64,000 bases of DNA, from contig JAMWBK010000005.1 of assembly GCA_029953675.1 (NCBI GenBank), positions 1,054,001-1,118,000 of the forward strand, written 5' to 3'. The notes beneath the pieces are model-generated. The model searched no databases, was not told where the DNA came from, and saw only the letters and a list, made by a program, of their open reading frames with translations. Source of the stretch: Rhodosorus marinus CCMP1338. Taxonomy: Eukaryota > Plantae > Rhodophyta. A program made the position numbers and the translations under genes. Within the stretch, counting starts at the first letter, position 1. Every line of letters starts with the position of its first letter. Shown piece by piece: positions 9,919 to 50,987 of this stretch.

Positions 9919-10434
9919 TTCCCCTACGCTCTCTCGACCCTCTTCCCCCGTTCGGAATACCTCGCGTAGACAGGGCACACACCTCCCCTATCTCCTCGCT
10001 CTCTATCTCACGTCGGGATCTATTCGCTAATCGAATAAACAGACGATTCTTCTCGATTGATCAATCCTGCTGTTTCCAGGAAGTAACCAGCCGGTGATCT
10101 GCAAGCAGCTTTGTCAATCTGTTTTTTTTTTGTTCCGATTGTGGCTTCTCCGGACCCTTGGGTCAACGGCAAGAGTTGTAACCGGCTCACGGGGACCAAG
10201 GGTCATAGCTATTAGAGTTCTGTCTTGCATGTACGGACGAGTTGCATTCATAATTCCAAACTTGTATTTACTTAGTGCCTCATATGCTAAAGAATACTGC
10301 TGTATCAATACGCAGAAGTGTTGGGGGTTAGTGCTTTCGTGCAACCAGACGGCTTCTTTTTCGACCGGTCGCCATCCTGGCGTGTAGACGGGGTGTCCTC
10401 CAGCTCCCTCGTTCTCCCATTACCGCCGGGCAGC

Positions 10435-10665
10435 TTAGCTCGATGCGTTGGGGAAGTCCGTTCCGGGGCGATCGAGGGTCCCGTAAGCGGCCCTCACGGC
10501 ATAAGCCGCCTGGAGGAGCGCGTAAAAGTACAGCATCAGGATACCGTAGAAGATCAGCAGGGCACCGAGAATCTGGCCCCATTCCCAGGCGGTGTTGCCC
10601 CAGATTTCCGTCCTTCCATCACGCTTCTGAACCGGGTTGCTAATTTTCGGGCAGCTGCACTTCAT
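10435..10665 (-). CDS. Small single-pass membrane protein resembling the N-terminal/TM segment of X,K-ATPase beta subunits
   Basis: 76-aa ORF with strongly C/G-ending codons and one TM segment. EIWGNTAWEWGQILGALLIFYGILMLYFYALLQ aligns without gaps to the beta-subunit segment as I recall it. A likely intron (GTTAGT...TACTAG) lies just upstream of the ATG. Confidence 0.7.
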   Translation of the reverse strand: MKCSCPKISNPVQKRDGRTEIWGNTAWEWGQILGALLIFYGILMLYFYALLQAAYAVRAAYGTLDRPGTDFPNASS

Positions 10666-12598
10666 CGTTTTTCTTTCGGCCTAGTAAACCAAAGACCAAA
10701 ACACAACTAACTTCCTTGTTAACTCAAAATCCCCCACCCCCCGCCCCGCCAACACCCCACCCCTCAAAAGCAAAGAAAGCTAACCAGATCCCCAGCCACC
10801 AGCCTCCTTCACCTCCCCCTCCCCCACCACGGACATTTCCATGGAAATGTCAACGGACTAAATACTCGATGGAAATGGTCAGTTTACAACTAGGACGCGT
10901 GTCCTTACTTAGCATGTCATTCACTGAGTGGTATAAACGCGATTCCTTTAAAACAATAAAATTCAACATATATGACATAAAATCAATACAATATAATATA
11001 TCTAAACCAATCTTTTTATCCTTTTTCAGTCCGATGTCCAATAAACGTCGAATTATCACGGCAACTATTGTAGAATAAAGCAGAAATTACAAAGATGGAA
11101 TCCCGCCGTATGGTTTGGTGAAGGCTCCGTTCAGCAAATGAGAACTTGTGAGAACCTCCCCTAACAGAACGCTAGAGGAGAAGACGCGTGCGTGATTATT
11201 ATTGGATTATGAAGGATCGGTTTGGACACGTGGAAATAGGAAGTGGATAATGTTATAGGGGAAATAGGAAAAGTACAGGTTGCGCTGGCCTGCGAGAGGA
11301 ATGGTGTCGTGTTTGGAAAGCGGGCGCGGAGACGGTGAGAGATTCATTTTTACAGTAAAACGATATATTTGTTTTCCATCTTTTTCGTGGTGGTGGATGT
11401 TCTCTTTTTCTTTCTCCGACAGGGTAAGGGGGAGTGGGAAGAGAAAGGAATTTGGGGTGGTTGCCCAGGGGGGGGGATTTGGGTTTGTGAAACCCTTAGA
11501 GATTTGCACCCCCCTTTACAGGAGAACAAAAAATTCGTTTACTTCGTAATTCTGGAGCTTTTAGGTATATATGTGAAAGAAATACAACTTGTATAAGTAG
11601 CTATAAACTTCCCCCATTTTGAGTTTTTGGCCGGTTTGACGGTTGATTATTAAGAACAAGTCATGACCAAAAAAAATAGTAAAAGGGGGGGGGGGGGTTA
11701 TGGTTGCATTTTATTTAGTGAGCCTTTTGGAGCTTCTTGACGGGGCAGCCTTAGCGCTTCAAATGTCGCCAGACAGTCAAGACCTTTAATTGATTGATTT
11801 TCCGAAAAGGCGTTTTGGGTTGGAATGTCATTTGGGTTGAAGGATAAAATGTGGAATGCCACGATAGCGTTTGGCTGGTGAGGAGGTTGGGGCAAGCATT
11901 GTCAGATGTTCTCGCTCTGGTACAGGACTAGAGCGCCCATGATTTGACTAGCAAAGTCAAAAGGTGCCTACTTTGCAAGGACGGGGAAGGCACGATATCG
12001 AGCCTTTTGTCACGTGCTCTCTGAACGTCGCGATCTGGGAACTGGAATGACCTGCTTTGCACGTGATCGCGAATGGTTGTGCGATCCCGGCGACGTTCAC
12101 GAGTGCTTGGGTCCAGCCAGACCTCCAAAACTAGCAATCACGTAGGCGGACGCTTCGAAACCAGCGAAGCCTTTCGAGTTTCAGGATTGCATCCTATTGT
12201 CCACAGCTGTGCTCCCAGACTGGCGAGGATTGAGACCGCCTGGGTATATGGAGATAAGCCTTCATTATTTCGCAGTCCAGTCCAGGAGCTAGAATCCGGC
12301 AAGCAGACACACACTGAACGGTTTGAAGCTTTGGAACTGGCGGGTGCCCGCATGAACTCGCGTCTGTGGATCATTGGTACTTAGTATCTCTTCTTGGCAA
12401 GATAAAAAGGCGTTCCCCAAGACGTTGAAGAGCCGAGAAAGTATCGAAGCAGGGTATCATTTTGTTCATTCACAGGTTAACTTATATAAGTGTCCAGATT
12501 CGAATTATTTGAACAGAAGTACATCTCTAGAAGTGAAATGCCCACCGGAGCCATGTTCTAATGTCATATGCGAAGAGCCAATGGCTTGAACATCGCTT

Positions 12599-26455: not shown

Positions 26456-27811
26456 TCACTTTGCGATTGCCTCAGTTTCAGTGCGCTTATCCTTCTCAGA
26501 CTGGAATAGGCAGATCGTTGCAGTGATCATGTTCAACAGGGGAAAGGCGAAGGGTGCGTTCGGCATGTAGGGAGCGGCCCCGTCGTGTGTGGAAAACACT
26601 CCAAACACCAAAGACATCAGCAGCGACCCAAATCCAGTTTGCAAAGTGCTCATTGCGGACAGGGAACCTTGCAAAGATCCCTGTTCTGAAGTTGGTACCT
26701 GCCTGGCTATGATAGCCCGCAAAGTCGGAATCGCTATCCACCCAAACGAGCCGACGAAAAGAGACGCGTAGGCATGCCAAGACTTCGTCATGAAGGTCAT
26801 CACGAGAAGGTATCCAAGCTCCGATATGAACCCAAGTTTCATCGTCGGATACTCTCCAAAGGCCTTAATCGCAAACCGCGTGAGCAAACCCTGGTTTATA
26901 ATTGCCACGATTCCAGCAAACGATAAATAGCGACCAATGTCGGCCGCCTCCCAACTGAGCCTTTCGTGGAAATATAGGTAGGCAATGCCGTGCCAAACCG
27001 TGGTGAAGTTAATCAAGAACTGAGTGGCAACAAGCGACGTCAGATATTTGTCTCGCTTGAAGAGCCGAGTGAAGTTAATAACATCAAGATTGATTGCTCT
27101 CTTGTGTGGATTCTTTAAGGTCTCCGGCATAAACCATATACCGAAAGCCGCTAGTCCGAAAAGGCCAACGCTCGCCCAGAGCGCCGTTTGTTCGTTGAAA
27201 TTGGAGACGATCAATCCGCCGACCATTGGACCCAGCGCGAAGCTCGCGCCCCCAACTACTCCCAAAACCCCAAAGAACACTGGCTCATTCCCAGTCCCTA
27301 CAACAATATCAGCCACACACGCGTTGGCTGTAGTTGGAAAGGCGGATCCGACGCTGGACATGTACTTGGAGAGCACATACATGGGCAGAGTTCTGAAACT
27401 TGCCAGGAGAGCAATTTCCATCGCAAACCCTGCGACTCCGAACAGGAGCACCGGTTTCCGTCCCACACGATCAGACAGCGCTCCAACGTACGGGAGCAAA
27501 ACAAGCTCAAGAGGCATTGTCGCAAAACTGATAATTCCCGAAGCATAAGCAGCTTTTGAGGTGCTGCCGTTCATGATCCTCAACAAAAGAGAGGGCAGAA
27601 CCGGTATCAATATAGAGATAGCAAACGTCACCAAGAACAGAAGAGCCATCACGAATGCAAATTTTCGAACGTCCAGCTCCTGCGCCTCAACTCGTGTTTT
27701 CTCCTCATCATCGCTGAACGCTGTCCGCTCCCCACTGCTCGATCCATACGAACTCTCTCCAGCAAGCGACGTCAACGTCATGTCCTCAGACACCTGTTCC
27801 GTCTCCATCAT
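26456..27811 (-). CDS. MFS transporter, TetA/DHA1 (MFSD14-like) family, intronless
   Basis: About 12 hydrophobic segments, motif A GALSDRVGRKPVLL, motif C-like GGASFALGPMVGG, and EQGSLQGSLS. Confidence 0.9.
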   Translation of the reverse strand: MMETEQVSEDMTLTSLAGESSYGSSSGERTAFSDDEEKTRVEAQELDVRKFAFVMALLFLVTFAISILIPVLPSLLLRIMNGSTSKAAYASGIISFATMPLELVLLPYVGALSDRVGRKPVLLFGVAGFAMEIALLASFRTLPMYVLSKYMSSVGSAFPTTANACVADIVVGTGNEPVFFGVLGVVGGASFALGPMVGGLIVSNFNEQTALWASVGLFGLAAFGIWFMPETLKNPHKRAINLDVINFTRLFKRDKYLTSLVATQFLINFTTVWHGIAYLYFHERLSWEAADIGRYLSFAGIVAIINQGLLTRFAIKAFGEYPTMKLGFISELGYLLVMTFMTKSWHAYASLFVGSFGWIAIPTLRAIIARQVPTSEQGSLQGSLSAMSTLQTGFGSLLMSLVFGVFSTHDGAAPYMPNAPFAFPLLNMITATICLFQSEKDKRTETEAIAK

Positions 27812-29838
27812 TACCAGAGAAAACCGCAACCAATCCCTCTTCTCAACCAGCCATCACCAGAAACCGAATCACAGCAAACGCTCACCAATCACCCACAAGC
27901 GCAGTTCTCTCAAAACATCCAAAAAAACTCGCCTAGCCAACACAACCCACAGGCCAACTATGCTGTAAATACAGCCCTTGCCAAACCCACCCCGAAGCCC
28001 CTCGCCAGCACAAACAGCATGTGCCCCACTTGGCCCCCCTCCCCACTTCTAACACCCAAAGCCGCACCAGGTGCCAATCTCCTTTTATACAACCCCTGGT
28101 TTGTGTCTTCAGTCTTCGAACGACGTAAAACTCTGGAAATTGGGGGGAGTACTAGTCCCCCGTCATCAAATGAAGTCAAACTCACTGCTCTCCTCACCCC
28201 TCACTGGCAACCCCCGTCATTCAATGACCTATGACGTAAAATAAAATCGATCGAAATTCTTTCTTATCACACTGTTTTAACTAACACCCTAAACTTCTTA
28301 AATAAAACATCCATAGACAAATTCTTGATTCCTAAAATATTTCGCAACAAATATTCCCGTGAGAAAATATATCCTTGAGGGCGGATTTCTCGGTTCCCCT
28401 TTCTTTTTTTTGGAAATCAAGGATACACACCCTTCACACACACAAGGACAACACCCCCCCGCACCCCTTTTCTCTTCCCCCAATCAATTCTTGTCCACAA
28501 TTTCGGGGTTCGGTTGATCAACGGTCTCTCCTCTTGAGACGCGTTTGAGATTGAATATGTGAAAAGTGCTTTTGCAAACAAAAACGAAGGAAAAGTTTTT
28601 GTCTTCAGAAGAAGTTCTCATTGGCTTTTTTTCATGTTTGCTATGAGCTTCAGACTTTGAGTGATTGGTTGATTGGTTTATGTATTATAGAATAAAATAA
28701 ATAGAACGTGCAATTTGGTTTCTGGTATTTGAGGCCAATTATTGAAATGGAGAAAATTAATGAGGAAAAGGGATTGTATGTTTTGTAATCATGAATACCG
28801 TAATTATTATGGCACATATACTGATATGAGCATTTCATATTGGCTAATGTCAATGACACTTGCACGTTCATTTGTTGAACTTAATGTCTGAATTATATTA
28901 ATTTGTGAATGGAAGATCGCGGAAGGGGATTGTTGTCCCTTTTCAACGGCAAGTCTGGATACTGGGATGTGACGGGGATGGCCTAAAAGCTTCCAAATAT
29001 TAAGTGTTTTTAGCAGCAGGGGGGGTCTGCTTATTTTCATTGTTGTTGGAAAACGATTCTTGAAGCTTCAAAAACATGTATAAACTATATTTGCAAAGTA
29101 TCCCAACCGCTGGGCAACGTTTCCGGTGTGGTAGTGGTGGGGGAAGGGGGAGGGGGGAAGGGAATAGAGGAACAGTCTCATGTGAAAAAGAGGGAATTTG
29201 TTGGTGAAATGACAGCAATCGTCTGTAGATATTGATTGCCGACCTTGCCCACAGCGTGAGGGGTATATAGGTGGCAGGGCTTCGCTCTGCAGAAGCGAGT
29301 AAAAGCATAACGCTCCGTGGGCTGATTGCACGTAGAGGACATTTCCGAGCTCCTACAGGACGGCACACATAGTCAAGAAGGTCAGGTCCGCGCACACACG
29401 AGCGTCCCGTGTACCCCAATACCTCAAAAAGTTCCCAAGTTGCGAAAGCCACAGAGCTGGTGGAGGCTCTGCTGGGTGTATATACGTTTTGGTGTTGATT
29501 TCTGTACATTTCCACGCAGACTGCTTCCAGAAACGTCAGATGTCACGATGTGCTGGAGCGCACCCTCAACCCTGAAAAGCCTCGCCATGAAACCATCTAG
29601 AATAATCAGGTGAAATGGCCAATGCCATTGTTCGCACAGACTCACGCGGAGACGAAAATAAGCCCCAGGTGGTCGTCCAGTGCTAGTTATTTCGTACGTT
29701 TTTACGCTCGTTAGCTAATTTAATGTAGTAGCAAGTTAGAATTACGCGAGGGCCACAGAGAGCACTCGTCATGGTGTAGCAGACTGGATACAGGGGTGGG
29801 ACATAGCGTCATCGCGACGGGCGAGCCCTGCAGATCCC

Positions 29839-31348
29839 CTACTCGTCAATAGACGCAAAATGCTTGTCTCCAACGACTTTTTTCTCCTTTCCCTCTGTAT
29901 GCTCCAAGGCAATCGACTTGAACTTGTTCATGGCCAGCACAAGATGGACATACTTCCGAAGATTTTTCTCCTGTTCTCGGAGAGACACCAAATCGACGTC
30001 GAGAGGTTTATCGGACAGTTCAGAGGACCGCTTAAACCAATCATGCTCAAGAGCGGCCTGGGCATTCAACCGTTTCAAGGGATCTCGCGAAAGAAGACCA
30101 TGAACGAGGCTCCAAGCATATGGTGAGACCGTCTTCCACACAGGTGAGTCTGGGGTCGCGACGCTTCCTGGTTGCATATGCTCGTCATCAGGATCAAAAC
30201 TCGGTAACTCGCCGCTTATTAGAGCGTACATTACAATTCCGAGGGACCATAGGTCAACAGCTTCATCGTACTCGCTGTCCCCAGTGATCTCTGGTGCCAT
30301 GTACAATGGTGTCCCCACGTACGACTTAAGCTGGCGAAAATCAGCATTCTCTCCTCGGCTCACCGAGCACCGCCTCTCTGCATCGTGTGTTAGTCTCCCC
30401 GCCAGTCCAAAGTCAGCGATTTTGACTTTCAAGCCTTTCTCATACGTGCACAGGATGTTGTCGAGCTTCAAATCTCGATGCACAACGCCACAGTTGTGTA
30501 GGTAGTTGACCGCTTCAAGTAGTTGCTGCATGACGTACTGTGCGTCACTTTCTCTGAATTTGTGCATGCAAATGAGGCGATCAACGAGCATCCCCCCTTT
30601 AACAAGTTCCATCACAATATAAATATCTGCCTTTGTCTCAAACGCGTCAACAAGACGAACGATGCTGTCGTGTAATAAGCGCTGTTGAATGTCAATCTCT
30701 CGTCGCAGCCGTGGGATTATCCTCCTGTCGGTCTTGGACTTCTTAATGACCTTGACGGCGTACACTTCTTCCGGTGCCGTGGCAGATTTGCTCGAGTGTT
30801 CTACTATGCCCTGGTGTACGCTTCCAAAAGCACCAGTCCCAAGCTCATCCTTCAAAGCTATGAACGGCGAAATGTCCTGTCAAAACCCATCAGACGATAG
30901 TTCCTCTGCATCAGCTAACCAGCTCACAGTCGCAAGCTGTGAAAGAGATGAAGGCCCACCTTGCTCGTGACGAGTGCCAGTACTCGCAACCACGCCTTCG
31001 TTTCCTCGTGAGTGTCTGCTTGAAATTGAACGACTCTTTTCGGCGTTGTGACGACGACGTTCCCTCCCTGGCCAACCTGAGCTTTCATTGAGCTGCACCG
31101 AACGGTCCACATGACCTAACCATTTAAATTTCAAAGGCATGTGAGCAAACTATGAGTATTTCTTCTCCAATTTCCCCACTGCGGTTCACTCTTCCCACCT
31201 GATCATCCTTAAACGCCCGTAACCAGAGACTGTTCAACTCTAGATGAAGTCTCTCGGAGAAGAACAGAAAAGCCCTGGTGGAAACATAACCTTTCATACA
31301 CACACGCCGGGAAATTGGCCCATCCTGAGGAAGATGAAAGTCTTCCAT
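29839..31348 (-). CDS. CAMK-group Ser/Thr kinase with N-terminal PH-like domain, 2 introns
   Basis: LGTGAFGSV, YAVKVI, HRDLKLDN, KIADFG, GTPLYMAPE, DLWSLG. Upstream exons carry MKGYV...LELNSLWLRAFKDD and FQADTHEETKAWLRVL (PH C-terminal helix). Confidence 0.9.
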
Positions 31349-39779: not shown

Positions 39780-41103
39780 ATGCTGAGCTTCACTGGGACT
39801 GGAGTCTTGTCAACGCGGAGGAGCGGGAGGATGAGCCAGGCTATTCGGAAGCGGGTGGTCGTCGCTTCGGTGGTACCCGAAAAGGCTGAGGCGAAAGTGA
39901 GTATCGGGAGTGCCGCGCTGCCAGGGGCTGTGATTGGGTTTTCAGTGGTCAATAGGGTCATCTACAGGACCTTGCTCGTGCCGATGAAGGACTACACTTT
40001 CTTTATTACTCAATTTATTACGTTTGCTTACGTTGCGGTCTACGGGGCTTTTTTGATGTCGAGGCGGAAGAAAGGAATTGTCACTGATGATATGATAGCC
40101 GTGGCCAAGAACAAATGGAAGACTTTCGCGTTGATTGGAGGCCTGGAGGCGCTTACATTGGCTGTCCAATTGTACAGTGGTGCGAGGCTTCCAGGATCCC
40201 TTTTGGGGATTCTTTCCCAAGGAATCTTGCCTTTCACGATGATTTGTTCAATTCTGCTACGCGGCAGGAAATATTCTGCCCTGCAGGTACGCAATATCTC
40301 CTCTGCTCGCGTTTGCTCTTACAAAGTTTTGACCCTAATCTTACGCTGTGCAATAACTTTAGGTCTCAAGTATAGGGGTTATTATTGCTGGTGTTTTGGT
40401 GACTATTTATCCTACTTTCTCATCTCTTTCATCTACTCTTGGAATGGAGCTGCTCGTCAACTCCGCTCTGTTCTTCATGTCATGCGGATTCATTGCACTT
40501 GCGCTCGTGCTCAAAGAAGGCGCGCTTCAGGGAGAAAGCCTGGATATTTTTGTGGTCAACACTTCAAGCTCGTTCATGCAGATGCTCGCCGCGATTGTCC
40601 TGATGCCTTTCTCTTTTGCCGTGGCTCTTGGAGGTCTAAGCCTTGACAAGTCGTTAGACTATGTCCATGCTGGAGTTCGGACTGCAGTTGGTAAGTAGGA
40701 TTCTCCCTGCTCCAATGTTCTCTACCCTCTTGCTTTGCTCTCGTTGGACACTCTTTGTTGGTGGAAGAAGTGCTTTGTTATTCATATTCATAGTTTATCT
40801 TGTACAGGAATGGAAGGCCTACGAGTAACCCCGTATATAGGGTTGGCCTATATGACCGTCAACCTTATTATGAACATTTTGGGGATTACGCTGATCAAGA
40901 ATATGTCAGCTGTAACCGCCATTCTAACTTCCATTGCGACAGTGCCAATAGTGACACTCGTCTTCTGCTTGGATCTTCCCCTTCTGGCGCCTCAACCGTT
41001 CACCCCGCTGTTCGTATTGGGAGTCCTCGCTGTCCTCGTGGGATTGGCTATGTACAACTATGAGGGCTTGCAGAAGGCTCGAGCCGCAAAGGATAAAACT
41101 TAG
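39780..41103 (+). CDS. CLT: CRT-like transporter (chloroquine-resistance-transporter-like, plastid thiol transporter), 2 introns
   Basis: VNRVIYRTLLVPMKDYTFFITQFITFAYVAVYG...GIVTDDM and GRKYSALQV parallel plant CLT1-3. Transit-peptide-like N-terminus. Confidence 0.85.
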
Positions 41104-41122: not shown

Positions 41123-43684
41123 TCATGGTGTTGAAAACCCGCGATTTCTCCCTTCCGTTAGGAGCGATCCGTCACCCACAGGTTGGTCAACGCTGGTAGG
41201 CACTCCGCGTTTAAGGTGTTTGTGGAAGCCTTCCCTCGCTCCTTCGAGAGCCGTCTCGTGCTTGAAGGCCACGATGCGATCAATTAACTCGTCGTCTGTT
41301 GGTATGCCGACTCTCCGCATATCCTTAAACGCGTTGACGGCTTCTTGTAAGCTCGCTTGGTTCTGGAAGCCTTCGATCAGCATCTCGTACGCTCTGTATC
41401 CCGGCTTTGGCTGAACCTTCAAGAGTAATTCAAAGATCCTGCACGCGCTGGTTATGTCGCCTAGGGTCAAATAAGCGCTCAAGAACGCCCGGCAGGTGTG
41501 CCCATTTGGGAGTAGGTTGCGCTCTAGCATATTTCCAAGCACGCCCATCGCCTCGCCAAATTTGAAACTCATGCACAAGGCACGAATCATTGAGTTGTAC
41601 GCATGCACATCAGGGAGCATCCCTCTTTCCATAATGTTTTCGAACACGGCATATGCCTTCTCATATTGTCCGTTAATCCCGTATGCGTCAACAATGTGCG
41701 TCATCGTGAAGCAATTTGGAGTGAAGCCCATTCTTTCCTCAAGTTCCCTCAGAACCGAAATCGAACCGTCCGGGTTTCCGCAATGACCATATGCATGCAT
41801 CATGCTCTCGTAAATTGCAAGGGTGGGTCCTTTAACTGCAACCAAGTACGGAGATAAGACCCGGGGGTAAGCAAACAGAGCGACATTCCCGCTAACACTG
41901 GAGGATCTAGTTCAACCTACCTTCGTCTTTGACAGCATCAAAAGCGCCTTTGGCACTAATCAGATTGCGCTGTAGGCCAAACGCCCTGATGAGATGGACT
42001 TGCACATTGTATTTCCTTCTAGGCTGGAGAAGTGCGACATTCTTTGCGCAAAAAATTACTCCTTCTACCTCCTTCTTCAACGCATAGGCCTTTGCCAGCT
42101 TTTCGTAAGTGGCTGGCGTTTTGTTCTGCACCATGTGAAAAGTTTTCAAAGCTTGCCCAAGTTGTCCGTTCATCCCGAAAGCATCAATCATTGCGTTATA
42201 TACACAATCCAGTCCCGTATCACGTCTCCTCTTTGCTTCTTCATAGAGGTCGTACGCATCTCCTATCCTCCCGTCTCGCGCATAATTGATTATAAGACGA
42301 GCATAGTAGCTCCCTGGCGGCTCCATCTAACCATAAGTCAACAAAAGTGAATTAACTCCTTGCCATCCAGAACGCGCCTCAGGACACGCAAAGATGGCTG
42401 TTACAGCTACCCTGTCCATGTTGGGTTACATACTTGTCCCTGTCGGGTGAGAGCGAGAAGCTTCTCAATTGACGCAGTGTCCCCGCATCTCATGTAGCTC
42501 TCAGTCAAACGATCTATATCCTTCATCCTTAGACCTTGAGCACCTTGCATGGCGAGGCTGTGAACATCTCGAACACCAGCTACATCATTCTTCCGAGAGA
42601 ACGCGTCTGCGAGGCCCATCAACGTCTTCCTGTGAGGTTTTATTCTCGCGTCCAACATTTTTTCCACAGCAGCTTTGGCACCTTCAAGATCCCTTGCCTG
42701 CAACCAAGAAAACGGTGACGATGAGAAAGAAAACCATCCTGTCAGAAATGGATATGGTGTTTACAAACGAGCGCGGAACGTTCGCCAGTCCTCTGCGATT
42801 GCTGATGATCTCCTCAGCAATACTATAAAGCGGCACTCGCACTGCCCCTTACTGTGAGGGGAGGCAGAAAGCCTTTTAGTCTTGCCAGTTTGGTTTTGAT
42901 CCAAGACCCTCACCTTGCTGTAGAGCGCAACAAGCTTGGAGTAGAACGCCTCGTTGCGCGTCACGCCTTTGTCCGAGAGCGCTCTTGTGGATACTTCCTT
43001 AAATTCATCATATTTACCCCGGCTCAATGCATCATCCATAAGACACAAGTACATTCCCGGGTCCAGTTTCAACCCTTGATTTTTGAGTTCATCGCCGATG
43101 GGCTGCAAGTCAAGCTTGTTCATGAGCGTCGCATTAAGAACCCATCGCAGTACCAGGGGGGTCAATTCAACGTTGTTTACACGTAAAAGTTCCAAGGTTT
43201 CCCCGGTATTCCTTAGAAGGCGGACGAGGATATGGATACAGGCAGGTGTTATTCTTAGTTCGTTCTCGAACATCTCCGCTATGACCTCTCTTGCCTCAGT
43301 TACCATCTTGCGTTTGGTCAGCACATCAAGGACTGGGACATATGGTCCCACATCCCTGAACTCTGCCTTGGCCTTTCTTTGGCCGATTTTGATTACATCA
43401 CGGGCTTGGTCAACGTGTCCGTGGTATGCCAACAAACGTACCATCTTTTCAACTAGCTTCTGGTTCGCTTGCCCATAACCATTTAGCCACATGTCAGCAA
43501 CCCTCGTACAATCCTCGACTCTTGCTTCCAAGCTCGGAACCCTGAACCACCTCACTCCGCCGTTCGCGAAGATCACGTTCTTCGACGACGCTCTGCGCCA
43601 TGCAGAAGAGCTCGTGTTCAGCATGCTTGACGACAAACGAGCGCTCTCGAGCAAACGATCGCAGCCAGATGTAGAAGAAAACAC
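41123..43684 (-). CDS. Pentatricopeptide-repeat (PPR) protein, at least 3 introns; start uncertain (up to about 44.1 kb)
   Basis: Repeated 35-aa units such as PDVHAYNSMIRALC-FGEAMGVLGNMLERNLLP and PNCFTMTHIVDAYGINGQYEKAYAVFENIMERGML. Confidence 0.88.
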
Positions 43685-45058: not shown

Positions 45059-48000
45059 ATGGCGTCCGTAGTATCGACATCGGAGCTGCTTTCTGTAAGT
45101 TTCGCGCCTTCAGATCTTTGGTTTTTCGGTTTTTTGTTTGGTAGTTGGGGGGTGCCGTTTGGCCTGCTTTTTAATCCTGTACTTGAAGTTGTTGTGCTTG
45201 GAGGGTTAAACTGCCCATGTTGGTTTTCGTTTGATCCCGATCATCGTCTGGGTCCTTGTTAGACGTTTTTGCCTGTTGCTCCCAGGTTCTGACATGTTTT
45301 TCATTCTGTTTCTCACCTGCTGAAATTTAGCTCCCGGCTCTAGGGGTTGATGCCCAGTTTATCTCGTTTCAAAATCTTACTCTTGAGTCGTCCAACTTCC
45401 TGTGCGTTCGCGAGACGAACGCACAGGGTGCAGTTGAGATCGTGATAGTTGATCTTATGAATCCAAGCATCTTGGATCGACGTCCAATGTCAGCAGAGTC
45501 AGTACTTATGAACCCTGAGTCGAAGGTGATGGCCTTACGCGCCAGGGGACAGCTCCAGCTTTTTGACTACGGGACAAGGGCGAAACTGAAGGGAGCCTCC
45601 ATGAGTGAACAGATCGATTTTTGGAAATGGATTAGTCCGAGCACGGTAGGAATTGTGACGCCATCTTCTGTCTATCATTGGAGAAAGGATGATCAGTCAG
45701 AACCCGTGAAGGTCTTTGACCGGCATGCATCCTTGAAAGCTGGACAGAACCCGATGTCGATTATTACATACCGAGCCGATCTGTATGAGGAATGGCTCTG
45801 CCTGGTGGGAATAGCGCCTTCGGTACGTCGAATTCGCACAGACGAATATTCAGTCACTAGGTTTTGCTGGGGATCTCTAATTTGCTCTTTGTGCGTGCAC
45901 GTGCTCTCTTGTACAGGGTGGATCCGTTGTCGGGCAAATGCAATTGTATTCTACGAAGAAAAAAATATCGCAAGCAATAGAAGGCCAGGCAGCGACGTTT
46001 GCCACGATGAACATGTCCGGTCATGAAACAACGTTATTCGCGTTTGCAAATCGGAACGCTCAGGGGGGAAAGCTCCACATCATAGAAGTCGGTCAGGAGA
46101 GGAAGGACGACACCGCGCCAAAATTTGAGAAGAAGCAGGTTCCTGTGAATTTCCCAGCAGACGCACCAGCCGACTTTCCCGTGTCCATGCAGGTAAGTAG
46201 CAAGGAGGAATTTGTATTATACAGACGAGTTCTCATTGCATGCATAGACAACAATGTTTAATCGGTCCTCATTGCGCGGACCTCTCTCTTTCCCCTCACC
46301 GCCCAGGTATCATCAAAGTACGGAATACTCTATCTCGTCACGAAGATGGGCTATGTGCATGTTTTTGATATCGAAACAGCCACTAACATTGCGGTCCAGA
46401 AAGTATCTAGCGATCCCGTCTTCATCTCCACTCCGCACAAGGAATCTGGAGGCTTGGTGGGTGTTGATAGACAGGGACGAGTCCTCCTCACATCGATCAA
46501 CGAGGCAGCTGTTGTGCCTTACGTGCAAAACACGCTTGGCAACCCAGAGCTGGCGATCCGTATAGCCGCGAAGAACGGCTTTCCGGGAGCAGAGCAGTTT
46601 TTCGTACAGAAATTCAATTCTCTCTTCGAAGGAGGACACTACAAAGAGGCTGCAATGATTGCCGGAGAGTCTCCGGCGGGCTTTCTTAGAACGCAAGAGA
46701 CCATGCAGAGGTTCAAGGACTTGCCATCGGAAGAAGGGAAACCTGCGGCATTGCTTGTATACTTCCAGACGCTACTTGAGAATGGAAAGTTGAACAAAAT
46801 TGAGTCAGTCGAACTTGGCGAGCTTCTGCTCTCGTATCAGCGGGTTGAGCTCTTGGAGAAGTGGATCAAAGAGGATAAACTCGAATGCTCGGAAGAACTG
46901 GGAGATGTCATCAAGTCTCAAAATAGTCAGCTCGCAACAGCAGTGTTTGTCAAGGCGGAGGCGCACATGAGGGTGATTCAGGGACTGCTGGAGGCTGGGC
47001 AAACGGAGAAAGTCCCATTGTACGCCGAAAGAGTGGGCCTCAACATCAGCCAAACCGAGTTGGTAAGCATGGCGACCTCGGTAAACCCCACGGCAGCTTT
47101 GCAGTTGATGCAGGATATGGGCAACATGGGAAACGCCCCAACAGACCACAAAGCAATGGTAGAAATGCTGCTCAACAAGGGCATGGTCCAAGAGGCGACG
47201 ACGTATTGTGTGAACAAGATGACCGATTCTGATGAGAATGGGGAAATCCAGACGAAGCTCCTCGAGTCAAACTTACAGTCAGCCCCGCAAGTAGCAGACG
47301 CGATACTAACGAGAAAAGCCTGGACCAAGTTCGATAACAACAAAGTGGCAAAGATGGCCGAACGCGCAGGGCTATACAATCATGCTTTGGCTAGTTATTC
47401 GGATATCGCGGATGTGAAGAGGGTTTTGCAGAATGCTTCGAGTATGGACGCAAACTTCGTCACTGAGTACTTTGGAACGATGAACCCCGACGATGCGGTG
47501 GCGTGCCTTCAGGACCTCGTCCGTGGAGGGCAAAGAGCCAATCTGCCGCTAGCTGTACAAATTGGCTCCAAGTATCACCATGAGCTTGGGACCAACAAGA
47601 TTCTCACCATTTTTGCCTCGCTGAAGAATCAAGAAGCTTTGTTCATGTATTTAAACGGAATAATCGAGAGCTCGGACGACCCTGACATTCATTTCAAGTA
47701 CATTGAAGTCGGGTGCAAACTGCAGCAGTTCCAGGAAGTTGAAAGAATAACTCGGGAGAGTGAGCACTATGAGCCGGAGAGGGTCAAAAACTTCTTGAAG
47801 GATATGAAGCTCAGAGATCCGCGCCCACTGATTAACGTTTGCGACAAGTATAATTACGTGGGAGAGCTCATCAAGTTCATGGTCAAGAACAATCAGCTGA
47901 GGTTTGTAGAAGGGTATGTGCAAAAGGTCAACCCGGCAAGGTGCCCTGTGGTGGTCGGTTCTCTCCTTGATCTAGATCAGGACGAGGAGTTCATCAAAGG

Positions 48001-50987
48001 AGTAGTCATGTCGGTGAAGAACACTGTGAATATCGAAGAGCTCGTGAAGGAGGTGGAGGAGAGGAAAAAGCTTCGGATTCTGCTGCCGTTCTTTGAGTCG
48101 AGGATGCAAGATGGGGACAAAGAACCCGACGTCCATACAGGAATGGCCAAGGTGTACGTGGACTGTAACGTGAACCCGGAGCACTTTCTGGAGACCGATG
48201 AACTGTATGACCATCTCCAGGTAGGCGCTTTCTGTGAGAAGCGTGATCCGCATCTTGCCTTTATGGCGTACATGAAAGGTCAATGTGATGAGCAGCTGCT
48301 TGATGTAACCACGAAGAACCATCTTTTCAAGGAGCAGGCGCAATATCTGGTGGCGAGAGAGGACCTTGACTTATGGGCACAAGTACTAGACGAAGAAAAT
48401 GAACATAGGAAGCTTCTTGTAGAGCAGGTTATCTCGTCCGCTCTTCCCGAAACCAAGGAACCTGAGAAGGTTTCTTCGACAGTGAAAGCCTTCATTGCTG
48501 CCAACATGCCTTCAGTGTTGATGGAGTTGCTTGAAACGTTGGTGCTTCAGACGGTTGGGTCCGTATTCTCGCAGAACAGGAACTTGCAAAACCTTCTTCT
48601 TCTTACCTCCATTAAGGCGGATAAGAGTCGGGTCATGGACTATGTACGAAGGCTGGACAATTTTGACGGTGTCGATGTTGCTCAAATCGCAATAGCCGAA
48701 GAACTCTATGAAGAGGCATTCGCCATTTACGCGAAGATTGAAAAGTACGACCTAGCGGTCGATGTTCTGTTGGATAATATGAAGGATTTCGATCGCGGAA
48801 AGGAATTTGCAGCCAAAGTAGATCGCCCCGAGGTATGGAGCAGACTGGGTGCCGCTCTTGTTGAGAACGATTTGATTATCGAAGGTGTGAACGCTATTAT
48901 GAAGGCGAAAGACCCAGGAGCGTACATGACGGTAATCAGCAAAGCCAAGGATGGTGCCACCAATGAGGACTACAAGGTTATTGTCAAGTACTTGAAGTTT
49001 GCACGAGGAAAAGCCCGCGAGGGAGGCAGCGCTATTGATTCAGAAATCGTTTATGGACTTTGCGTAAATGGACAACTGTCCGAAATGGAGGAGTTCATCT
49101 CGTCCTCCAACCAGGCCGAACTGGAGGAAGTCGGGGACCGCGTGTTCGAGAAGGGTTTATTCGACGCTTCCAAGATCTTGTTCTCGTCCATCAACAACCA
49201 TGCTCGATTGGCCTGTGTTCTGGTTAAGCTTGGGGATTATCAAGCAGCTGTGGACGCGTCGAAGAAGGCGAACAAGATATCAACATGGAAGTTCGTATGC
49301 TTTGAATGCGTCGAAGCAAAGGAGTTTCGACTTGCGCAGACCTGTGGTCTTCAGCTCATTGTCGAAGCATCCGAGTTGCAGGTATGGTTGGTGAAGAGAG
49401 CCTCTGGGCCGTAGTGGTACGTGTCTCTGATGTGTCTCCCCCGCATATGTTTTTCGAAATGCTTCAGGAAGTAATTGACTACTATGAGCGAAGGGGATAC
49501 TTTACGCAGCTCATTGACCTGCTGGATGCTGGTCTTGTGTTGGAGAGGGCTATACCAAATATGTTCACGAATCTTGGGGTTTTACTAACAAAGTACAGGG
49601 AGGAACGTATGATGGATTTCTGCAAAATGTGGTGGCAACGAGCTAACGTGCCAAGGCTCCTCCGAGCATGCGACGATGCAAAGCTGTACGCGGAAAAGGT
49701 CTACCTCCACACTGTTTACAAGGAGTATGACCAGGCCGCTGCGACAATGATCGAACACGCCCCGTCGTCGTGGAGTCCGAGTTCGTTCATTGAGGTTATG
49801 ACAAAAGCTACTAATGTGGATGTCATGGTCAAGGGTACTTGGTTGCTCATACTCGGGTATCGCTTCTGTGTGTCTGTCTGTATTATTCCTCACTCACGTG
49901 CTTGTTTTCGATGGCAATAGGAGTGAGATTCTACATTGAGGAGCATCCTCAGTTGCTCAATGATCTTCTGCAGCTTCTGGGGGGAAAGATGGAAGAGGTT
50001 AGGACAATTGCTATGCTCAAAACTATTAACGCGGAGACATTCGGGCCGCTTGGGATTCTGCCACTGTGCAAGGAATATCTACTGAAACTGCAGGAGAAGA
50101 ACACTGTGGAGGTAAGCCTGGTTTTTTGTGTCAGAGTGAAATGCTAGTTTTGACCTGATAAACGAGGGTTTTGCATTTGATTCGAAGGTTAACGAAGCGC
50201 TGAACAACATTTATATTCGAGAGGGCGATCTCGATTCATTGAGGAGGAGCGCCAAAACCCATAAGAACTTTAACATTCCCGCGCTTGCGCATAGACTAGA
50301 AACTCATGAATTGCTGAACTACCGACGACTTGCCGTTGAGCTCTACAAAGAGGCGAAGAAATACGAACGTGCAATCGAGCTTGCAAAGGAGGACAGTCTT
50401 TATAAGGACGCGATCGATTGCGTAGCCGCTAGCAAGGTAAGCAAGGTTCTGAGCAGACGTAAGCCATAGAGCCGACCTGACTGGGAGGGAATTATTTGCC
50501 AGGATGCCGAGTTGACTGAGCAGTTGGCGCAGTTCTTCCTTGAAAACGGCTTGCGAGAATGTTATTCAGCAGTGCTGTACACGTGCTTTGAATTTTTCCG
50601 CCCCGACGTTGCTATCGAAATGGCATGGTCTCACCAAGTGATGGACTTTACGATGCCGTTTGTGATTCAGACCGTAAAGGAGATCAGCAACCGAGTCATC
50701 TTCCTCGAAGAGGTATGCATGGAGTTTAGTGACACACAATTCTCTTCCGCCAATGACTACATATGGCTTACTGAGCTTGCAAGGGTGTGTATTCCTTCGT
50801 ATAGATTGTCAAAGAACAAAAGGAGAAGGCTGAAGAGGACAAGAAGGCAGTTGATGATGAGGTTAATGATGATACAAGCGTGCTCCTCTATGGAGTACCG
50901 TCGAACATGGGGCAGACGGGTCAACTCATGTTTGGTGGTTCCGGCGGACCGGCTCAATTAACCCTTCCCGCACCGCCGTCTCAATAG
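45059..50987 (+). CDS. CHC1: Clathrin heavy chain, multi-exon
   Basis: VIVDL---RRPMSAESVLMNP, KYGILYLVTKMGYVHVFDIET, LECSEELGD, DPRPLINVCD, FCEKRDPHLA, NPEHFL and HEACYFEFFRPD-like C-terminal motifs; about 1,000-aa central exon. Confidence 0.97.

Follow-up and report, generated by a model that had tools for sequence, protein, structure and literature searches.

A short gene on the reverse strand of a 64-kb stretch of the Rhodosorus marinus genome (assembly GCA_029953675.1, contig JAMWBK010000005.1; hereafter the window, meaning the whole stretch analyzed) is annotated between CSN5 and IspD and encodes a 76-aa protein (P0001). The full peptide is MKCSCPKISNPVQKRDGRTEIWGNTAWEWGQILGALLIFYGILMLYFYALLQAAYAVRAAYGTLDRPGTDFPNASS, and its C-terminal tail ends ...DRPGTDFPNASS-stop. 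PMC10250338, in its data-availability statement, assigns the assembly to the red alga R. marinus, and the original prediction was right to speak of an alga. That prediction singled out the peptide EIWGNTAWEWGQILGALLIFYGILMLYFYALLQA (residues 20–53) and suggested that the protein may be an ancestral or minimal, ectodomain-less beta subunit of the algal sodium pump; the position, length, and peptide that it gave are exact. A stop codon lies in frame 5 codons 5′ of the ATG. The gene and its product have the following features.

10435–10665, reverse strand: complete single-exon coding sequence of the 76-aa protein, with an ATG start and a TAA stop at 10435–10437.
10591–10665, reverse strand: predicted cytoplasmic N-terminal segment, residues 1–25 (from the family alignment, AlphaFold2, and N-side Lys + Arg), with the motif K-C-x-x-P-K-x-S-N-P, a hairpin around R-x-D-G (12–21), and a juxtamembrane G23-x-T25.
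10507–10608, reverse strand: beta-subunit-like core, residues 20–53, aligning with ATP1B1 23–56 (E-F-L-G-R-T-x-x-S-W ... F-Y-G-x-L-x-x-x-F).
10483–10590, reverse strand: single long helix predicted by AlphaFold2 (pLDDT to 98), residues 26–61, with a transmembrane span at ~30–57.
10438–10482, reverse strand: short predicted exoplasmic tail, residues 62–76, from the family alignment.
10462–10470, reverse strand: R66-P67-G68 of the family tail motif F/L-x-R-P-G.
10441–10449, reverse strand: N-A-S sequon, N73–S75, not conserved in the family.
10235–10434, reverse strand: probable 3′ untranslated region.

The gene is real and constrained. Its GC3 is 0.75 against ~0.5 GC around the gene, which agrees with the strong bias toward C- and G-ending codons noted originally. 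A second Rhodosorus-like genome is represented in the Logan assembly of SRR32518361 (L002, 1635 bp); it is ~90% identical here, has the same synteny of this gene and IspD, and is usable for selection tests over the entire 64-kb window. The two coding sequences are 95.2% identical and gap-free, and the 5′ flanks are 65% identical with numerous gaps. The 3′ untranslated region is inferred from 86.4% identity, against 69.6% in intergenic DNA farther downstream. Seven synonymous and 4 non-synonymous changes separate the coding sequences (dS 0.15, dN 0.023), and with a dN/dS of 0.15 the gene is under purifying selection, as the original prediction expected. Just upstream of the gene start, the forward strand has a C-rich tract at 10700–10830 (G-rich on the gene's strand; GC skew ~−0.5), followed by a 30%-GC stretch at 10900–11100. 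The C-rich tract is not kept in the second genome, where a (GTTT)n run is found instead.

Homologs were identified by exhaustive phmmer search of 1.84 billion representatives, which returned 11 further cluster representatives at E ≤ 1e-3. Ten of the 11 are 74–117 aa long; the remaining one is a 196-aa transcript translation with a match confined to its first 58 residues. A word-indexed search recovered the query alone with the single protein and five members with the family alignment, so the exhaustive HMMER search was needed. Five relatives come from named red algae (Rhodosorus, Porphyra, Porphyridium, and Rhodella). They include an R. marinus paralog (KAJ8904260.1, NDN08_000784; P0004) with 39% identity to the window protein in a MAFFT alignment, Porphyra umbilicalis OSX76738.1, Porphyridium purpureum FVE85_8288, and a Rhodella violacea sequence (MMETSP0167). 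Two more are MMETSP transcripts, and the others derive from Logan, ENA/Tara, or NCBI contigs. All members with a named source are red algae, and the conserved small homologs foreseen in related algae are thus present in several red-algal classes.

The family consensus is MKxxxPKxSNPxxRRxDGxxxxxGxTGxEWxxxxxALLxLYxxxAxFFxxxLxxAxAIRxxxGTFxRPGxxxP, in which G17, E28, W29, F47, and R58 are invariant. A marine metagenome and Logan subgroup (P0006, P0008, and P0010; loci L008 and L004) has Trp, not Tyr, where beta-1 has Tyr43. P0006 and P0008, two of the three, have extended C-terminal tails that contain cysteine pairs (C-L-P-G-N-Q-G-C and C-L-Y-G-E-P-G-C), and these might form a rudimentary disulfide-bonded ecto-segment. 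A metagenome locus scan with the marine subgroup gave no confirmed locus, and the alignment of the whole family varied too much to yield search patterns. For this family of single-pass membrane proteins of roughly 75–120 residues, so far traced to red algae, no previous account was found in open-access papers or bioRxiv.

The AlphaFold2 model, with the family alignment as input, has strands at residues 12–15 and 18–21 and one helix at 26–61. The most hydrophobic 21-residue segment of the protein is 31–51. Conservation along the helix is periodic, peaking at exactly 100 degrees per residue, a value reached by 0.04% of shuffles, and falls on a face formed by L36, Y40, F47, L51, A54, and R58. Conservation on one helix face is a signature of helix packing on a partner. 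N-side Lys and Arg predominate in 9 of 11 members, although the N-side net charge is positive in just 7 of 11. The enrichment in most members fits a predicted N-in orientation, with a cytoplasmic N-terminus and the C-terminus outside.

Beyond the helix there are just 15–19 residues, and the tail of the window protein is cysteine-free. Most members carry one or two cysteines near basic residues within the first 10–15 residues (MKCSCPK, KKCTKCSNP, PKCSNP, MCKCHNP); those of the window protein are C3 and C5, at 10651–10659. On the predicted cytoplasmic side, they would be a possible S-acylation site. The C-terminal N-A-S sequon had originally been taken to fit type II topology. It occurs only in the window gene and its near-identical ortholog, 3 residues from the C-terminus, and the glycosylation argument was dropped because the sequon is not conserved across the family. 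Foldseek returned no match to the AlphaFold2 model (best E 3.1), as expected of a single-helix model.

The sole Pfam match of the window protein is PF00287, the X,K-ATPase beta-subunit family (13.1 bits, E 0.054; gathering cut-off 23.3), covering residues 19–53 of the protein and 21–55 of the profile. Its best PDB match by sequence is ATP1B3 (beta-3; E 0.37). Such single-sequence matches to beta would not be enough alone. PF00287 was matched by 8 of 12 family members (best E 4.4e-4), with no member reaching the gathering score, and the next Pfam family was matched by two. No better match to an unrelated small membrane-protein family, an outcome that would have spoken against the original prediction, turned up in Pfam. 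When a family profile was searched against 177,635 PDB sequences, the 13 best matches were all Na,K-ATPase beta chains, led by brine-shrimp beta-2 (8k1l_B, E 1.3e-4). The PDB search with the single protein also hit leech tryptase inhibitor, through C-x-C-P-K-I near the N-terminus, and these hits were set down to chance.

Fourteen family members were aligned by HHalign with 14 animal beta N-termini, for the most part vertebrate beta-1, -2, and -3, together with unlabelled fragments and the brine-shrimp and shark pieces. The probability was 94.6% (P 6.9e-8, score 47.7, 59 columns); the aligned region begins at the juxtamembrane G-x-T-x-x-x-W, spans the helix, and ends with R-P-G, which lies opposite the post-membrane P-P-G of beta. 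The controls retained composition and the hydrophobic block; on the same core columns the observed score was 46.2. Scores were 16.0 ± 3.3 (max 26.0) for 200 block-wise column shuffles, 11.3 ± 2.4 (max 28.9) for 200 full shuffles, and 16.8 for the reversed alignment. Without the three most beta-like sequences (P0001–P0003), HHalign still gave 93.8% (P 1.7e-7); the marine-metagenome subgroup alone gave a weak 36% (P 3.8e-4). A beta N-terminal HMM run over the 964 stop-to-stop segments of the window ranked this open reading frame first at 20.8 bits, with the runner-up at 7.7. The profile comparison proposed originally comes out in favor of beta: the family-level similarity to the beta N-terminal and transmembrane module is statistically significant.

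The 13 of 34 ungapped identities first counted against ATP1B1 were reproduced with a chimpanzee ATP1B1 fragment (P0017), which matched the human N-terminus at 100%. In register, family G23, T25, W29, Y/W40, and F47 correspond to beta-1 G26, T28, W32, Y43, and F50. Of the beta motif E-F-L-G-R-T-x-x-S-W with its following aromatic-rich helix F-Y-x-x-F-Y-G-x-L-A-x-x-F, Arg27, Phe38, and Tyr39 are not retained, and A35/L36 stand at the place of Phe38/Tyr39. The enzyme became heat-labile when leucine replaced Tyr39, Tyr43, or Phe50, from which its authors concluded that the conserved aromatics stabilize the alpha/beta unit (meeting abstract, PMC2268108). The beta similarity spans just ~36–59 residues, mainly hydrophobic helix, a setting in which convergence comes more easily than in soluble domains.

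Intron positions were compared between family genes and vertebrate ATP1B1. The first of two introns in the P. umbilicalis gene (L006 10001–10730) is in phase 1 and splits the codon immediately following the conserved Trp (GAA TGG A|gtacg...cacag|TC ACG); the second, in phase 0, lies three codons before R-P-G. Vertebrate ATP1B1 exon 1 read-through fragments end ...GGSW then Cys (T|GT), and exon 2 read-through fragments start with Val replacing Phe33 (g|TT), which places ATP1B1 intron 1 in phase 1 in the codon after Trp32. The first introns of both genes therefore interrupt the same codon in the same phase. By our own estimate, with two introns on each side and ~177 aligned nucleotide positions, exact coincidence by chance has a probability of ~2%. 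The R. marinus paralog has a single phase-0 intron two codons after the Trp, 5 nt from the Porphyra and vertebrate position, and the window gene and several other family genes are intronless. The argument is weakened because the paralog intron is 5 nt off and near-coincident sites occur within the family.

The R. marinus paralog (L007 10001–10339, forward strand) lies beside a P2C alpha gene. Its immediate divergent neighbor is a P-type ATPase (L007 4882–8409, reverse strand); the start codons of the paralog and this 1175-aa ATPase are 1.6 kb apart, head-to-head, with no other convincing open reading frame between them. Against human Na,K-ATPase alpha-3 the ATPase reaches 1020 bits, compared with ~900–1015 bits against the remaining Na,K- and H,K-ATPase alpha chains and no more than 379 bits against Ca-ATPases; by sequence it is unambiguously a P2C pump. 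Compared with alpha-3, it has ~145 extra residues in the M7–M8 extracellular loop (product residues ~900–1045) and is without the SYGQ motif, described, as cited in PMC9609216, as the docking motif for the beta ectodomain. Searches with the insert detected nothing similar in Pfam or PDB, the beta ectodomain included, and the idea that it is a displaced beta ectodomain was set aside.

It is the paralog that adjoins alpha; the window gene has no such neighbor, and no P-type ATPase is present in the 64-kb window. Nor is an ATPase neighbor present within flanks of ≤10 kb at the Porphyridium and Porphyra loci, two Logan contigs, a Tara scaffold, and another Logan contig. P2C alpha genes have been reported in Porphyra/Pyropia and Porphyridium (PMC12066774, PMC7911474). 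The other window open reading frames at 26456–27829 (reverse), 29839–30855 (reverse), 39780–40646 (forward), and 42761–43684 (reverse) match MFS transporter, protein kinase, and CRT-like transporter families, with one PPR-type match that is weak and below threshold; none of them belongs with the P-type ATPases. Two R. marinus clathrin heavy-chain paralogs, at 46346–49414 of the window (forward, a 1022-aa open reading frame) and L007 17574–20237 (reverse), are 52% identical over 481 aa, and each lies within 7–36 kb of one of the two family genes. These pairs, in which gene order is not collinear, may be the trace of an old segmental duplication.

With an ATPase neighbor at just one of ~6 independent loci examined, and with transmembrane helices known for spurious profile matches, the family might have a role unrelated to the sodium pump, its beta likeness being remote or fortuitous and the single alpha adjacency a chance event. 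We consider this unlikely. It needs the coincidence of a profile match of P ~1e-7 with clean shuffles and an adjacency whose chance, for a P2C gene in any of ~12 neighbor slots and assuming ~1e4 genes and a few P2C genes per genome, we estimate at ~1e-3 to 1e-2. Moreover, the partner family named by the sequence is exactly the partner of the neighboring gene.

The window protein is probably one of two R. marinus mini-beta paralogs, homologous to the beta membrane module and serving as a one-helix accessory subunit of a P2C pump. The original idea of a small beta-like protein is supported computationally by the family-level profile match, the homologs, and purifying selection, and it gains weight from two findings that it did not anticipate, the head-to-head placement of the paralog and a P2C alpha gene and the intron position common to Porphyra and vertebrate ATP1B1. 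Mini-beta would insert N-in, leaving its C-terminus outside. We infer that the conserved face would pack on M7/M10 of the alpha chain in the algal P2C Na+(/K+)-ATPase, and that mini-beta would stabilize the pump or aid its maturation, as the transmembrane helix of animal beta does. The role of the ectodomain would be dispensable or would have been assumed by the ~145-residue M7–M8 insert of the algal alpha.

Another reading is a small regulator associated with the pump but without homology to beta, acting in the manner of FXYD proteins, phospholamban, or sarcolipin, with a helix made convergent by packing on the same alpha surface. The likeness to beta is limited to a short juxtamembrane and helix stretch and lies below the Pfam threshold, alpha adjacency speaks for a functional link and not for common descent, and the family has motifs of its own that are not in beta (S-N-P, R-x-D-G, and the invariant E28 and R58). 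We nevertheless regard this reading as very unlikely. Non-membrane positions match in register on both sides of the helix (G-x-T-x-x-x-W ahead of it, P-G beyond it); the match stands ~9 standard deviations above composition-preserving shuffles; the Porphyra intron has its place and phase in common with ATP1B1; and FXYD and other small-regulator families were unmatched in Pfam.

FXYD proteins (gamma subunit, phospholemman) are also small single-pass accessories of Na,K-ATPase, similar in length to the family. They have an N-terminus outside and an extracellular F-X-Y-D motif, and bind at M9. They are type I, whereas the charge distribution of the family points the other way; the FXYD motif is absent from the window protein, and no family member has a Pfam FXYD match. 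FXYD proteins have been reported from metazoans only (PMC7911474). Phospholamban, sarcolipin, and the SERCA micropeptides are tiny single-helix partners of a P2-type ATPase (PMC10654040), as proposed for the family. However, SERCA micropeptides regulate P2A Ca-ATPases, and their motifs differ, with no sequence similarity to the family.

That the open reading frame is no gene, arising by chance or as an upstream open reading frame in the leader of IspD, is strongly disfavored and highly improbable: it is short and lies ~460–640 nt upstream of IspD on the same strand, but homologs occur as stand-alone transcripts and in different gene neighborhoods of other red algae, the frame is kept gap-free with 7 synonymous against 4 non-synonymous changes, GC3 is high, and the family distribution and dN/dS rule out an upstream open reading frame tied to IspD, since homologs elsewhere sit in unrelated neighborhoods.

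As probable homologs of the beta membrane module, the mini-beta proteins can be set beside known beta subunits (PF00287; ATP1B1-3, ATP4B, and arthropod beta/nervana). The family is likewise predicted to be N-in and single-pass, has the juxtamembrane G-x-T-x-x-x-W in the same register, an aromatic residue at the beta-1 Tyr43 position and Phe at Phe50, and a Pro-Gly motif shortly beyond the membrane on the outer side. The phase-1 intron in the codon after Trp is common to the Porphyra gene and vertebrate ATP1B1, and one family gene adjoins a P2C alpha gene. In contrast, the family ends ~15–20 residues past the membrane and is without the ~230-residue ectodomain, which makes up about four fifths of canonical beta and bears its three disulfide bridges and conserved N-glycan sites. 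The P2C alpha beside the paralog has no SYGQ docking motif, the family remains below the Pfam gathering cut-off, and it occurs in red algae, whereas beta is held to have arisen in Holozoa (PMC9609216).

The M7–M8 insert of algal P2C alpha chains has been proposed as the algal equivalent of beta, in pumps without a typical beta (PMC7911474). It addresses the same puzzle, but is an extracellular part of the alpha chain. The insert and the small family would be complementary, because the insert cannot supply a beta-type transmembrane helix and the family could.

The ancestral eukaryotic (or pre-holozoan) P2C pump may already have had a minimal one-helix beta, to which animals added the ectodomain while red algae added the M7–M8 domain to alpha; we put this forward tentatively and hold it to be doubtful. 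Alternatively, red algae may have acquired an animal-type alpha/beta pair whose ectodomain was then lost.

Beta is said to arise in Holozoa, and the P2C pumps of red and green algae are said to lack it (PMC9609216, PMC7911474, PMC10654040), a view that leaves open the folding, trafficking, and stability of algal P2C pumps. A sister copy of the window gene head-to-head with a sodium-pump gene suggests that beta-type subunits are maybe not confined to animals and their closest relatives. A mini-beta subunit of the red-algal pump would place the origin of the beta membrane module beyond animals, or point to an unusual transfer followed by reduction, and would separate, in a natural system, what the beta helix does from what the ectodomain does. 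It would also be a candidate missing component for heterologous algal sodium pumps, including in salt-tolerance work (PMC12066774, PMC7911474); PhNKA2 is salt-induced in Pyropia (PMC12066774). Short proteins annotated as hypothetical would then be able to conceal subunits of well-studied machines. If the ancestral reading holds, the red-algal family would represent the ancestral two-part pump in a living lineage, and similar overlooked partners may exist for further protist P2C pumps now supposed to be beta-less.
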